A stretch of DNA of 64,000 nucleotides from Macrostomum lignano (Eukaryota). The position numbers and the translations under genes are program-made. Shown here piece after piece: positions 20,783 to 35,275 of this stretch. Numbering within the stretch: the first letter of the stretch is position 1; every line of letters starts with the position of its first letter. The DNA lies in contig NIVC01001454.1 of the NCBI GenBank assembly GCA_002269645.1, positions 58,842-122,841 of the forward strand. The letters run 5' to 3'. The notes beneath the pieces were generated by a model. The model was given only the letters and a program-made list of their open reading frames with translations. It had not been told where the DNA came from and searched no databases.

Positions 20783-21070
20783 ATGCCTGTCTACTCACGA
20801 AAGACCGCCATTGTATCGCGCGTTGTCATGGTAGCGGCATTCATTAGTTGCCTGTTTGTCCTAATTGCAACAACACAAACGGCGGAAGCTGCCATTGTCC
20901 GAGCAACCGAAGACTCCTATGCCGACCTCTTGGACGCCGGCGCTGGAGGATTCGATTTGAGAAGCAAACGCGGTCCCGAACTTATGATGCTGCGCTTGAT
21001 GCAGTGCCGCTGGTACCGCAGTCACAACTGGGTTGCCCCTAAAGAAATGCACTGCTCTAAGCTTATCTAA
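20783..21070 (+). CDS. Secreted prepropeptide A (95 aa): signal, acidic pro-region, KR, 32-aa two-Cys mature peptide
   Basis: Hydrophobic VVMVAAFISCLFVLIA ending AEA; pro-region with EDSY; KR at residues 62-63; mature GPELMMLRLMQCRWYRSHNWVAPKEMHCSKLI; TATA box, poly(A) signals and a diverged paralogue at 35,015. Confidence 0.85.
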   Translation: MPVYSRKTAIVSRVVMVAAFISCLFVLIATTQTAEAAIVRATEDSYADLLDAGAGGFDLRSKRGPELMMLRLMQCRWYRSHNWVAPKEMHCSKLI

Positions 21071-21284
21071 CTGAATCTAATTGTGGAACTCATGGCTTGT
21101 GAAACCGATTCTAAAATCGTGCGTTAATTTCTGGCGATCTATGATTAGCAAATAAATCGAGAAAAATAAAAACTAATAAACCCGACATCAAATAGTTCAG
21201 AAAATAGTGAATTATAACTGAGAAATGTTTTTTGTGACTTTGTTTCTTATCATTCATATATTATATCTTAGCGAGTGGGTTCAC

Positions 21285-22200
21285 GAGTGATTTAATGAAT
21301 GAGTTCATTAGTGTTTTCATGAGTGAGTTCATGAGTGATTTAATGAATGAGTTCATGAGTGATTTAATGAATGGGTTCATGAGAGATTTAATGAATGGGT
21401 TCATGAGTGATTTCATGAGTGAGTTCATGAGTGATTTAATGAGTGACTTCATGAGTGATTTTATGAGTGAGTTCATGAGTGATTTAATGAATGAGTTCAT
21501 GAGTGATTTCATGAATGGGTTCATGAGAGATTTAATGAATGGGTTCATGAGTGATTTCATGAGTGAGTTCATGAGTGATTTAATGAGTGAGTTCATGAGT
21601 GAGTTCATGAGTGAGTTCATGAGAGATTTAATGAATGGGTTCATAAGTGATTTCATGAGTGAGTTCATGAGTGAGTTCATGAGAGATTTAATGAATGAGT
21701 TCATGAGAGATTTAATGAATGGGTTCATAAGTGATTTCATGAGTGAGTTCATGAGAGATTTAATGAATGAGTTCATAAGTGATTTAATGAATGAGTTCAT
21801 GAGTGATTTAATGAATGAGTTCATAAGTGGTTTAATGAATGAGTTCATGAGAGATTTAATGAATGGGTTCATAAGTGATTTCATGAGTGAGTTCATGAGT
21901 GAGTTCATGAGTGATTTAATGAGTGAGTTCATGAGTGAGTTCATGAGTGAGTTCATGAGTGATTTAATGAATGAGTTCATGAGAGATTTAATGAATGGGT
22001 TCATAAGTGATTTCATGAGTGAGTTCATGAGTGAGTTCATGAGTGAGTTCATGAGTGATTTAATGAGTGAGTTCATGAGTGAGTTCATGAGTGAGTTCAT
22101 GAGTGATTTAATGAATGAGTTCATGAGTGATTTAATGAGTGAGTTCATGAGTGAGTTGATAAGTGACTTAATGAATAAGTTCATGAATTAGTTTATGAGT
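21285..22200. repeat. 12-bp satellite (ATGAGTGAGTTC/ATGAGTGATTTA/ATGAATGRGTTC), copy 1
   Basis: Lies between the poly(A) signals of gene A and the promoter of gene B. Confidence 0.95.
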
Positions 22201-23069
22201 GAGTTGATTAGTGAGTGAGTTGATGAGTGATTTAATGAATGAGTGAGTGAGTGAGTGAGTCCATGAATGCGTTGATGACTGATTGAGTTCATGCGATAGA
22301 TAGATGCGATAGAACATGACACTAAAGCTGAGTGACTGCATGACTGGGCGCGATCGCGTGGGCGAGCACATGGTATTTAGGATGATTGCTAAAATGGAGA
22401 ATTAATTTTTCTGGGTCCTTTGAACTAGAATGGACTGACACAAGTGCATATGCGAGCCTACAAGTGCATAGAAACTGAAGCTTGGCGATGAGCAATGAAG
22501 CAAATATAACACGTGACAATTTTTCTGACACTTGAATGAAAGGTCAGGCATATGCGATTGCTGTCTCATCCAATTTTTTCTGTACCTGTCGTCAAACAGT
22601 TTGATCTTCAGTCAATCAATCAACTGCTCTGAAAATAGACCCTCGATCCTACAGTTTTATGATTATTAACAATTGATAACTTGTCAAAGCTGCGCTAGCG
22701 AAGTCTCTAGAATGACAGAAATGGACTTTTATAATGATGAAATGAAACCTCAGTTTAGCAGCGAAGCCTAAAGAATCGAAAAAGTACATTAAGTTTTTAA
22801 TTCAATCGCATACAAATGAGAGAGAGATAGAAGGACTAAACGACTGCTGCTGACTAGCCGATATGAATAGTCTATGGCCAAAGCTATTGATTCTGTCTGA
22901 CTTTACCGACTAGTCCATGGCTTTCACCCCAGAGCGGTACAGTGCCGCTCGATGGCTCCACTATTTAAGCGAGCATCCAAGAGCGCTAAAAAGACAAAAC
23001 CAACCAGTTAACTCCAAACACCTTTCATTATTCAACAAACAGACCGAGTATTACAGCATAGCAAGCATT

Positions 23070-32082: not shown

Positions 32083-32498
32083 AGAAAAAGATTGGCGCTA
32101 GTCTGACTGATTTTGATGGGAGGCTGCGCTTTGAAATGCAGATATGCTGATTGATTTAATGGACGCTTCGACGCTGAGCTAATGTTACCAACAATAGCAA
32201 TAACACTGATTAGCTAATTAATAAAGAAGCTTATCGCCCACTGCTTAAATAAAATATAACGTGTCAATTTACTTGATTGCTGATTCTGCATTGCTATTTT
32301 ATCCAGTTGATTCTCAGCCGTCAAATTGCAACTGATAGCTTTTTTAAGCTTGCCTGATCTTAATCAGAACTTGTATTATTAACTGGCAGATTCAATTAGC
32401 ACACTTTGAGGGAATGCTTAGAAGTCAATAGAATCTCTTTAAATTGTCTGCATGTTGCTACTGAAGACTGTATTAAGTAGTATAAATTAAGCGCTAAA

Positions 32499-32979
32499 AC
32501 AGACAGACAGACAGACAGATACACAGAAAGACAGACAGACAGACAGACAGACAGACAGACAGACAGACAGACAGACAGACAGAAGACAGACACACAGACA
32601 GACACACAGACAGACAGGCAGACATACAGGCAGACAGACAGACAGACAGACAGACAGGCAGGCAGGCAGGCAGGCAGGCAGGCAGGCAGGCAGGCAGGCA
32701 GGCAGGCAGGCAGGCAGGCAGGCAGGCAGGCAGGCAGGCAGGCAGGCAGGCAGGCAGGCAGGCAGGCAGGCAGGCAGGCAGGCAGGCAGGCAGGCAGGCA
32801 GGCAGGCAGGCAGGCAGGCAGGCAGGCAGGCAGGCAGGCAGGCAGGCAGGCAGGCAGGCAGGCAGGCAGGCAGGCAGGCAGGCAGGCAGGCAGGCAGGCA
32901 GGCAGGCAGGCAGGCAGGCAGGCAGGCAGGCAGGCAGGCAGGCAGGCAGGCAGGCAGGCAGGCAGGCAGGCAGGCAGAC
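32499..32979. repeat. (GACA)n-(GGCA)n compound microsatellite, copy 2
   Basis: Shorter than copy 1. Confidence 0.97.
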
Positions 32980-35014
32980 AAGGAGCTGAAATCCTCATAC
33001 TGCATACAACTTCAACAGCAGTGCGTCACAAAGTAAGAAATTGAAGATGCGCTCGTCAAACCAGTTGATAAAGCTGCAGTAAAAGTTTAAGCCGATGCAA
33101 AACGATCAGCAGCTCGTATATGCGGCTCGCAGATCTTGTCAGCGAATTTTTTACATTTCTGACAGATTGCTCCAGTTTTGCATTGGAAACAATTTTTCCC
33201 ATTATATTGTTTATTCTTTTCACACGAAGAAGTTTCTAAGCCAGATTAGACATTGCATGCTCCAATGGATATTGAAATGCACACCTACAAGTTGGAAAAT
33301 TTGCGTGAACTGGTTTGCGTCACAGCACAGATCTCAGTATACACGAATTCCTTATACATTTACAATGTCCACGATTTAAACTGCTTCGATTTCCAGGATC
33401 ATCGAATCATTTGATGGTCTTACTTTTTGAGCCCATCAAACAATTCGATGGTTCTGAAATTAAAGCACTTTAAACCATAGACTACGCGGTCCTGGCTTAG
33501 AATGAGCCCAATAACTATCAATAAATAAGCAATCGGAATTTACGTAGCAAATATGACGAATGCAAATGCAGAAAGGTATAGTAGCATATTGGACCATATA
33601 CAAGGTTATTTTAGAACGCGTGTTAAATGTTACGTAATCGTAGAATTGAATGACAACAGTAATAACAAGCTGCTTTAACAATGAATAAAAATTACGTTAA
33701 AAAGAAGACATGTCTTTGCATCTTGTTCTTGATGAGTTAGTTGGTGTGTCACTTCAAGTAGAAGTTGAAGGTGTACAGTTGTTTGTGCGCCCTGGCCAGC
33801 TTCTGGCAACGCTTCTCTCAACTTGACTGAAAATCATCGAGCGGGACGAGAAACAGACATCGCATCAGATTCACAATACAATGCATGGACTTTTGGCTAT
33901 AGCGGGCAGAGAAATGCGTTTCTGCCATCCACTGAGACCCACTGAGGGGACAGAAGAAAGGCGAATTTTGGTACACTTTTGGTACTTTGGAATCTTCGTA
34001 AGTCCTTTGTTCATCCACTAATCCATAATCATTAGATATTTATAACCAACAACAAATTAACCAACAAACAACAACAAAGCGCCATGACAATAGTGGGTTT
34101 TTTCTGTCATAGACATCTAAGCACTCAAAACCGACTATATTGAGCAGCATTATAATCACTATAGTCGTCTTAATCTTGTATGTAGCGCCAAAAATTCTTG
34201 ATTGTAGAAACAGAAATTGTAGATATTTGGAATGTTAGATTCTAGTTTTCAAATTGTAGCAGTCTCCTCAAAACCAGTTTCCGTAATAGTCCATTGATCC
34301 TTAATGGACAATTAAGTATCGCTTTTTCACGATCTAAATAGGAATTTGGACAATCAAAACAGCAAAAAAGCCATTCAAAACGGGAATTCACCCAATTTAA
34401 TGTACATGTATTCTTTATATCTCTGGGCCACTGGAATGGTTAAAAGTGAGCAAAGTGTCTGCAGTCTGCTTGCTATTGGAAGAAAAATAAAAGTAAATCC
34501 TGTCGCTGCAGGCACCTGCCAAGTGCCTCTGACAGCTCAGCTGCCGATGGGCCGCCTTCTCGGCGGTGACCACCTGATCCGCTCCAGCAGCATGAAGCGC
34601 CATTCCTCCTGTGTCACCCCTTACAGACGTAATCCTCTATGGGCTGCTTATTCCTCTTTGCGTCCAGTGCCGTCAGAGATAGCAGCCTGCGCAACTTTCG
34701 CTAAACGTCGTCTCAGAAGACACGATGGCAAAACGACTAAATGGTGCTGTTGAACGCATCGCTATTAACCAAATGCGCTATGAAAGAAAAGGACCTAGTT
34801 TACGTGATCTCGTACATCTAGGTGAAATCTTTTTCTGCACGCTTTCAATATCTATCGAAAAAAAGTATTTGGGATTATTCGCTTATTCATCCCGATTGGT
34901 TGTTGGATGAAAAAAATTAGTTGGGGTGTATTGAGCATTTCAGCCACTATATACAAAGGCAAAATACGAGTATCTAGATTTCATTTCTCCTCTTAATTTT
35001 CCACGAGAAGACAA

Positions 35015-35275
35015 ATGGCAACAATTATGGCGAAAAGCAACGCGATCGATTCGAAATTTCTCCTACTAGCATCGGCCATCGTACTCTGCTGCGGTGCGAT
35101 CCCCAACCAAGGGCCTAGTGAGGACAGCTACTCAAACTACGTAGAAGAGTCTGTGGATTTTCAGGCGCCGGCTAAACGCGGACCGGAGAACATGTTAATG
35201 CGCAAGTTTATCTGCGATTACTACAGGCATCACAACTGGAAACCGCCTGCCTATCTGAAGTGTCACCAAATGTGA
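35015..35275 (+). CDS. Secreted prepropeptide C (86 aa), paralogue of A
   Basis: Signal KFLLLASAIVLCCGA; pro-region with EDSY; KR at residues 54-55; mature GPENMLMRKFICDYYRHHNWKPPAYLKCHQM is 13/31 identical to A with both Cys aligned; TATACAAA at ~34,949; AATAAA at 35,357. Confidence 0.85.
   Translation: MATIMAKSNAIDSKFLLLASAIVLCCGAIPNQGPSEDSYSNYVEESVDFQAPAKRGPENMLMRKFICDYYRHHNWKPPAYLKCHQM

Follow-up and report, generated by a model that had tools for sequence, protein, structure and literature searches.

A small family of prohormone-like genes predicted to encode secreted peptides with a single Cys loop in Macrostomum lignano

In receptor-constrained neuropeptides the mature peptide is conserved and the prepro region is free to diverge; in the precursors of conotoxins and of amphibian antimicrobial peptides, the prepro region is kept and the mature peptide is hypervariable. 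The interior of the Cys ring comprises 8 residues in MCH, 10 in somatostatin, and 4 in urotensin II, and CNP-22 terminates exactly at its second Cys. In flatworms, orphan genes of the prohormone type are frequent (PMC2953531). In this study, a stretch of 64 000 nucleotides from Macrostomum lignano (GenBank assembly GCA_002269645.1, contig NIVC01001454.1, positions 58 842 to 122 841 of the forward strand; referred to as the window) was analysed with respect to three short genes, designated A, A′, and C, each of which encodes a putative precursor of a Cys-looped peptide. Together with an unlinked paralogue, D, these genes are, as judged from sequence comparison, a real, small gene family that had not been described before, and each of them would probably yield a secreted peptide of 28–32 residues with one disulfide.

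The layout proposed in a first-pass annotation of the window (signal peptide, acidic pro-piece, KR, and a mature peptide of 31 or 32 residues) was recovered for A, A′, and C on the forward strand (Table 1). In A and C, a basic N terminus is followed by a hydrophobic core, a −3/−1 small-residue site, an acidic spacer, KR, and a basic peptide that runs to the stop codon. Candidate leader cuts (AEA↓A in A, CCG↓A in C, and AVA↓L in D) were placed heuristically from hydrophobicity and the −3/−1 rule; all three precursors have a basic n-region and an h-region of 15–17 residues, for which the Kyte–Doolittle(11) maximum is 2.9 in each case, and a cleavable leader is plausible for each of them. The coding sequences (CDSs) of the called genes are intronless, the gene ranges being equal to the CDS lengths. 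The earlier count of three intronless genes holds in this respect, but A and A′ are not independent, because both sit in a recent 8.47 kb tandem segmental duplication.

The mature peptides of A and C were aligned without gaps and share 13/31 identities, as had been reported (tblastn, E 8e-10). Their net charges amount to +2.9 (A) and +3.0 (C), in line with the previous estimate of about +3, and that of D to +4.7; the pro-pieces carry charges of −3.2 (A), −5.2 (C), and −0.2 (D), that of D not being acidic. In A, C, and D alike, 15 residues lie between the two Cys residues (C-x15-C), and neither A nor C ends in a Gly available for amidation, both features being those already noted for A and C. 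The calculated monoisotopic masses of the oxidised peptides are 3940.91 (A), 3903.82 (C), and 3215.65 Da (D), to which 2.016 is added in each case for the reduced form. A conserved acidic-Tyr motif is present in the otherwise diverged pro-pieces (EDSY in A, 20909–20920; EDSY in C, 35120–35131; SETY in D, L003 ~5217–5228), and by its resemblance to such sites it might conceivably serve in tyrosine sulfation or in sorting. TATA and AATAAA signals were found near each gene, as claimed before. In addition to the boxes listed in Table 1, a second TATA-like box (TATAAACC) lies at −52 from the ATG of A; the boxes of A′ are likewise at −93 and −52, and its AATAAA signals follow the stop codon at 81–105 nt, as in A. 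Because such motifs are common throughout the window (~1–1.5 per kb), they are weak evidence when taken alone.

Paralogue D was retrieved by database searching. A word-indexed profile search with A and C, which covered 5.8e9 proteins, returned A and C alone. When 1.84e9 cluster representatives were scanned in full with HMMER and a profile of the EDSY-to-end region of A and C, five matches were obtained, namely A, C, an in-frame fusion of C with a neighbouring gene (B::C, P0003), P0004, and P0005. P0005 (E 6.6e-4) is D, the product of which reads MQRLNGSLLIALVFTMALCIATLDAVA↓LSPSG...SETYLMRQRPDSESPAAALLSRKRR↓GPENVLMRAYQCNLYRKQGKKPPPSLKC-stop from its first Met, with RKRR immediately before the mature peptide. 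Its layout is that of A and C (leader, pro-piece, a GPE start right after the basic site, and a 15-residue loop); it shares 16/28 identities with C and 10/28 with A, and a TATAAAT box lies 129 nt 5′ of the first Met. D exists in three copies, is on a contig unlinked to A and C, and adjoins a Delta/Jagged-like gene. The basic site is held in one register across the paralogues (RSKR↓GPE in A, AKR↓GPE in C, and RKRR↓GPE in D), and the pattern invariant in all three is GPE-x4-R-x3-C-x2-YR-x6-P-x4-C. The strongest single argument that this pattern is biological is that a profile blind to D retrieved D from a whole-database scan.

The match P0004 (1540 aa, 87.9 bits, 23 stretches) was rejected as spurious: it is a translated tandem repeat in which weak matches to 'RRPELMLLRVYRLLHHWNA' were summed. 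It originates from the ENA metagenome contig ERZ25072724 (L005 501–5123; repeat unit ...RRPELMLLRVYRLLHHWNATQ...) and illustrates how a repeat can produce a deceptively significant E-value for a whole sequence.

When D was included in a second profile search, M. lignano proteins only were returned; the M. lignano matches are annotated as 'hypothetical protein BOX15_Mlig...'. Six-frame translations of the window and of seven further loci, when searched with the HMM, gave no members beyond the known copies. Nothing relevant to A, C, or D was found in Pfam at E ≤ 10 (a weak, irrelevant Fig1 match was returned for A only), the PDB sequence search produced noise only (E ~1), and the full-text literature search revealed neither a mention of the peptide strings or of the gene ids Mlig026277 and Mlig013743 nor a paper on the peptide-signalling repertoire of M. 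lignano. These Pfam, PDB, protein-database, and literature searches bear out the earlier impression that the peptides belong to no named family. A conserved cullin-3 exon of the window was used as a control, for which the best matches showed at most 71% identity and neither a congener nor the M. lignano protein itself was among the matches listed. Absence of the family elsewhere is hence weak evidence, since even with this exon close relatives from Macrostomum did not come to light in the databases. Parasitic flatworms are represented in the databases (e.g., Heterobilharzia), yet without a family member; at that distance the family would be hard to detect, because its constrained core comprises 28 residues. 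The family is probably restricted to macrostomids, and the label 'lineage-specific' that had been attached to it is only weakly established.

Regional similarity was scored as z against 1000 shuffles. The mature regions gave values of 10.7 (A–C), 9.0 (A–D), and 13.5 (C–D), as against 1.3, −0.5, and 0.1, respectively, for the signal regions; among the pro-pieces only the pair A–C was significant (z 4.8, from EDSY and KR), with 0.0 for A–D and 1.1 for C–D. Divergence of the signal and pro regions in all but EDSY, as first described, is thus reproduced. A and C can be regarded as old paralogues; their synonymous sites are saturated (pS 0.70–0.97), and dN increases from 0.60 (mature region) through 0.82 (pro-piece) to 0.96 (signal region). 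The syntenic copies, of which there are three per gene, differ at eight CDS nucleotides, seven of these differences being synonymous, and their 400 nt flanks differ by ~1.5–2.8%. The lone replacement (S22G) is located in the leader of gene A, and none was found in any mature region. A crude binomial estimate, with 75% of random changes taken as non-synonymous, gives P ~4e-4, and the synonymous excess agrees with the comparison of the paralogues A, C, and D. The open reading frame (ORF) is intact in each of the nine or ten copies, which are spread over seven contigs. On these comparisons, the family is under purifying selection with the constraint centred on the predicted released peptide, which is where the first-pass annotation had placed it.

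Evidence of transcription was taken from the assembly annotation, which was derived from a genome-guided RNA-seq transcriptome (StringTie/TACO/TBONE, 'coregenes') and not ab initio (PMC5730564). GenBank gene models exist for A, C, D, and B::C, the proteins of A and C being exact matches to annotated proteins of GCA_002269645.1, and because the models are RNA-seq-derived they provide indirect evidence that these genes are transcribed. The 5′-partial model of D starts ~40 nt 3′ of its TATA box, as expected for a TATA-driven start. That the genes are non-functional, i.e., chance or decaying ORFs of a duplicated, repeat-rich region that were annotated via spurious transcripts, is very improbable. 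The shortness of the ORFs (86–97 codons), the density of minisatellites and the segmental duplication in the region, the fact that A is uncalled on NIVC01001453.1 despite its intact ORF, and the finding of exact copies of these proteins in the NCBI genome source only would suit such an origin. It is opposed by the three paralogues, in which cleavage site, GPE, YR, P, and Cys spacing have been kept although the synonymous sites are saturated, by the intact copies and the 7/8 synonymous differences, and by the derivation of the models from transcripts. In all, no described family was matched, and selection, transcript-derived models, and predicted leaders were found.

Processing of the precursors can be envisaged as follows: The hydrophobic leader would route the precursor to the endoplasmic reticulum and would then be removed (at AEA↓A in A and at AVA↓L in D), the two invariant Cys residues would pair to form a 17-membered ring (C-x15-C), and a subtilisin-like proprotein convertase would cut after RSKR↓G (A), RKRR↓G (D), and AKR↓G (C). 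The sites of A and D are full furin-type sites (R-X-K/R-R). The product would be a basic peptide (+3 to +5) of 28–32 residues beginning with G-P-E, and its Gly-Pro start could conceivably shield it from aminopeptidases or make it a dipeptidyl-peptidase substrate. Since the precursor ends with this peptide, neither trimming by a carboxypeptidase nor amidation would be required. Processing enzymes are present in flatworms: RNAi against planarian pc2 altered the mass-spectrometric peptide profiles (PMC2953531). An AlphaFold 2 (AF2) model built on the three-sequence alignment places a helix at mature residues 2–17 (block pLDDT ~80).

With moderate confidence, A, A′, C, and D are read here as a small, old, transcribed prepropeptide family, the product of which would act as a ligand on a specific receptor, be it as a neuropeptide, a hormone, or a pheromone-type signal. 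Several points weigh against this assignment. The searches of 5.8e9 and 1.84e9 proteins gave no homologue outside M. lignano, so the deep conservation typical of many neuropeptides is not shown. The selection test comprises eight substitutions only. The leader cut was placed by heuristics, and for signal peptides h-regions of 15–17 residues are near the upper end of the length range. The AF2 model is of low overall confidence (pLDDT 64, pTM 0.30, three-sequence alignment). Neither amidation nor pyroglutamate is present, features that are common though not obligatory in flatworm neuropeptides. A tandemly duplicating cluster next to a secreted repeat protein (B), together with TATA promoters, would fit abundant gland products as well.

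It is improbable that the peptides are host-defence or antimicrobial peptides or toxins, in which a cationic peptide, looped near its C terminus by a disulfide, would be kept neutralised by the acidic pro-piece until its secretion. The succession of signal, acidic pro-piece, KR, and cationic Cys-containing peptide is common to amphibian skin antimicrobial peptides and conotoxins, the peptides carry net charges of +3 to +4.7, A and C have an acidic pro-piece, and the family appears to be lineage-restricted. The pattern of conservation, however, is inverted in comparison with toxin and antimicrobial families, the prepro region being at chance-level similarity and the mature peptide being kept, and the pro-piece of D is not acidic. 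The helical hydrophobic moment of residues 3–20 is low (0.20 for A, 0.31 for C, and 0.10 for D) and the mean hydrophobicity is negative; the cationic amphipathic helical class was rejected on these moments despite charges of +2.9 to +4.7. In local alignments against shuffles (30 tests against MCH, ANP/BNP/CNP, somatostatin, urotensin II, sex peptide, arenicin, and thanatin), arenicin gave p 0.21–0.70, and thanatin reached p 0.03 with D only, uncorrected among the 30 tests. Because the mature peptide is conserved while the prepro region has diverged, and because amphipathicity is low, a receptor-acting ligand is favoured over a toxin or antimicrobial peptide.

The genes A and A′ occupy the two units of the tandem duplication, which differ mostly in minisatellite length, and gene C starts ~100 nt past the end of the second unit. 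Each unit also contains a copy of the unrelated gene B, the GPRSAAPLR/GPRSAAAY repeats of which derive from a 27 nt minisatellite (23149–23292); no Pfam match was found for B. Its repeat number varies among the three loci, and it also differs between the genome (204 codons in L004) and the annotated product (178 aa). Syntenic arrangements were found on NIVC01001453.1 (A-B-C) and on NIVC01002271.1 (A, then the in-frame B::C fusion). The duplication was seen on NIVC01001454.1 only; in the stretches of the other two contigs that were examined, there are one A and one B, and these contigs appear to carry a single unit. Residue 22 of A is Ser in both copies of the window and Gly on the other two contigs. 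The presence of three syntenic copies fits the neopolyploid genome described for M. lignano in PMC10733133.

In the fusion, window position 31922 is joined to 35081, with ~3.16 kb deleted. The leader of B, its GPRSAAPLR repeats, and its acidic stretch are connected to C at Val23 through a 3 nt CGT microhomology; the pro-piece, KR, and mature peptide of C are kept, and C's own leader is replaced. Either the fusion exists in the genome, as a deletion allele or a homeologue, or it was produced by the assembly.

This arrangement bears on a further explanation, according to which the peptides are exocrine gland products, either prostate or seminal peptides passed to the partner at mating (cf. Drosophila sex peptide) or constituents of adhesive, rhabdite, or mucus secretions; the precursors would be processed in the same way, and the target would be the partner or the environment. 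We consider this less likely than a signalling role, but it is a serious alternative and deserves more weight than an antimicrobial or toxic function. It would account for the clustering with an unrelated secreted repeat protein in a tandem duplication, for the TATA-box promoters, and for the annotation of the in-frame B::C fusion as an expressed gene, which suggests a possible common secretory context for B and C. In their abundance of Trp, Tyr, and His and in their one predicted disulfide, the peptides resemble sex peptide. Homologues were found in M. lignano only, and reproductive proteins of the genus are described as turning over fast (PMC7336406). Reproductive proteins more often diverge fast, however, whereas the mature peptide has been kept across paralogues with saturated synonymous sites and shows zero replacements between homeologous copies. 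In addition, D is solitary and unlinked beside the Delta/Jagged-like gene, outside any gland-gene cluster; sex peptide is not similar in sequence (p 0.2–0.97); and, as a weak point, the gene ids were absent from the M. lignano paper supplements searched, a set that does not include the seminal-fluid screen PMC5977470 and the files of which may use other id systems. From the list of roles in the first-pass annotation (hormone, pheromone, seminal, toxin, or antimicrobial), hormone, neuropeptide, pheromone, and gland product are therefore retained, and toxin and antimicrobial peptide are disfavoured.

Table 1. Coordinates of the genes, processing sites, and neighbouring features (window positions unless another locus is given).
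Feature	Position	Strand	Remarks
Gene A, CDS	20783-21070	+	95 aa + stop; ORF search
Gene A, leader	20783-20890	+	residues 1-36; putative cut AEA↓A
Gene A, acidic pro-piece	20891-20965	+	
Gene A, KR site	20966-20971	+	within RSKR furin-type context
Gene A, predicted mature 32-mer	20972-21067	+	GPELMMLRLMQCRWYRSHNWVAPKEMHCSKLI; exact-string and pattern search, six-frame translation
Gene A, TATA-like box	20690-20697	+	TATAAAAA; 93 nt 5′ of ATG
Gene A, three AATAAA	21151-21180	+	81, 95, and 105 nt past stop
Gene A′, CDS	29271-29558	+	0/288 nt differences from A
Gene A′, predicted mature peptide	29460-29555	+	same as that of A
Gene C, CDS	35015-35275	+	86 aa + stop
Gene C, leader	35015-35095	+	~residues 1-27
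Gene C, acidic pro-piece	35096-35173	+	
Gene C, KR site	35174-35179	+	
Gene C, predicted mature 31-mer	35180-35272	+	GPENMLMRKFICDYYRHHNWKPPAYLKCHQM
Gene C, TATA-like box	34948-34955	+	TATATACA; 67 nt 5′ of ATG
Gene C, AATAAA	35357-35362	+	82 nt past stop
Duplication unit 1 (A, B)	17966-26440		8.47 kb tandem segmental duplication
Duplication unit 2 (A′, B′)	26434-34914		96-98% identical to unit 1
Gene B	23070-23486	+	unrelated neighbour, secreted-type; leader MKFQLALPIVALVLISTALICSAA, 9-aa repeats, acidic tail
Gene B′	31666-32082	+	protein same as that of B
B::C fusion	L004 (NIVC01002271.1) 10001-10615		PAA59383.1, BOX15_Mlig026277g1; junction ~10412-10430
Ty3/gypsy-type long terminal repeat retrotransposon remnant	6976-11367	+	
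Ty3/gypsy remnant, gag	6976-7722	+	with zinc knuckle
Ty3/gypsy remnant, protease and start of reverse transcriptase	7596-8996	+	
Ty3/gypsy remnant, RNase H	9373-10221	+	
Ty3/gypsy remnant, integrase	10225-11367	+	
580-aa ORF	17364-19106	-	no Pfam match; partly inside duplicated unit
398-aa ORF	26378-27574	-	second copy of 580-aa ORF; not called as gene
871-aa ORF	41117-43732	-	part of called ~1500-aa gene downstream of C
Cullin-3-like exons	59746-60396, 62684-63595	+	Pfam Cullin positions 1-164, 385-493; at most 71% identity to animal cullin-3 among matches listed

The remainder of the window contains the other features of Table 1. The Ty3/gypsy remnant is probably inactive, because its pol region is split across several ORFs. 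For the 871-aa ORF, the lone Pfam match (Band 3 cytoplasmic domain, E 1e-4) does not reach the gathering score. When the window was scanned for Rfam families and for tRNAs, no match was obtained. Minisatellites are very dense (43 TRF rows with a score of at least 200; units of 12–35 nt in arrays of 1–2 kb), with examples at 1542–3036, 3358–4986, 15786–17336, 21273–22256, 36211–38120, and 44944–46175; several arrays create long spurious ORFs on both strands, e.g., 21261–22184 (−) and 21295–22191 (+).

The family is of a classical kind and not conceptually surprising. Conserved disulfide-looped peptides with several paralogues are nevertheless a cheap target in the search for new ligand–receptor pairs or for mating-related secreted peptides, and for 28–32-mers the preparation of probes, RNAi, and synthetic peptides is straightforward. 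M. lignano is described as the only flatworm with stable transgenesis (PMC8717057). Peptide genes as short as these are missed by similarity searches, because only ~28 residues are constrained. The B::C fusion offers a testable case of prepro replacement through microhomology-mediated deletion.

Comparison with described peptide families starts from the orphan secreted peptide prohormones of planarians (PMC2953531), which likewise combine a signal sequence with dibasic sites, are processed by PC2, and in many cases have no homologues outside flatworms. The planarian peptides are mostly short, amidated, and encoded in multiple copies, whereas those of A, C, and D are single-copy, long, disulfide-looped, and non-amidated, and no sequence kinship to any other flatworm's protein was found in the profile searches. 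Drosophila sex peptide and DUP99B are alike in being secreted, Trp-rich peptides of ~30–36 aa with one C-terminal disulfide loop and a narrow lineage; sex peptide, unlike A, C, and D, has neither a pro-piece nor dibasic processing. The shuffle tests revealed no similarity common to A, C, and D. Homology to MCH was considered and rejected: MLR-M--R-YR occurs in A only (p 0.04 against human MCH, uncorrected among 30 tests) with the Cys residues out of register, C and D gave p 0.47 and 0.40, and there was no Pfam match. The C-x8-C ring of MCH, which ends in Y-R-P ahead of the second Cys, also differs from the C-x15-C ring of A, C, and D. At E ≤ 10, none of A, C, and D matched a Pfam model for pro-MCH, somatostatin, or urotensin II, these models being assumed to be in the library.

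The natriuretic peptides (ANP/BNP/CNP) also have a 17-membered C-x15-C ring in a basic, non-amidated peptide of 22–32 aa, which is released from the C terminus of its precursor by a furin/corin-type cut, and D ends at its second Cys, as does CNP. Membership of this family was rejected, as no residue of the CFG-x3-DRI-x3-SGLGC motif is present, no Pfam match was obtained, and the shuffle tests gave p 0.10–0.98. The resemblance lies in size and ring only and is most simply seen as convergence. A more far-reaching version of the signalling assignment, which we put forward tentatively as possible and not as probable, is that A, C, and D would represent a new macrostomid or flatworm peptide-hormone family, with a non-amidated ligand of 17-membered ring acting on its own receptor; ring size and precursor position would have converged with the vertebrate natriuretic peptides, and the B::C fusion would be a prepro swap caught midway, with the ligand kept. 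In organisation, the closest likeness is to pro-MCH, prosomatostatin/allatostatin-C, and pro-urotensin II, small precursors in which a spacer and a dibasic or furin-type site precede one non-amidated Cys-loop peptide, which extends to the stop codon or close to it and on which conservation is centred; the 15 residues between the Cys residues of A, C, and D stand against the smaller rings of these hormones given at the outset. Although it belongs to no named family among those compared, each precursor is, by its predicted layout, built to work like a classical prohormone with its peptide at the C terminus.

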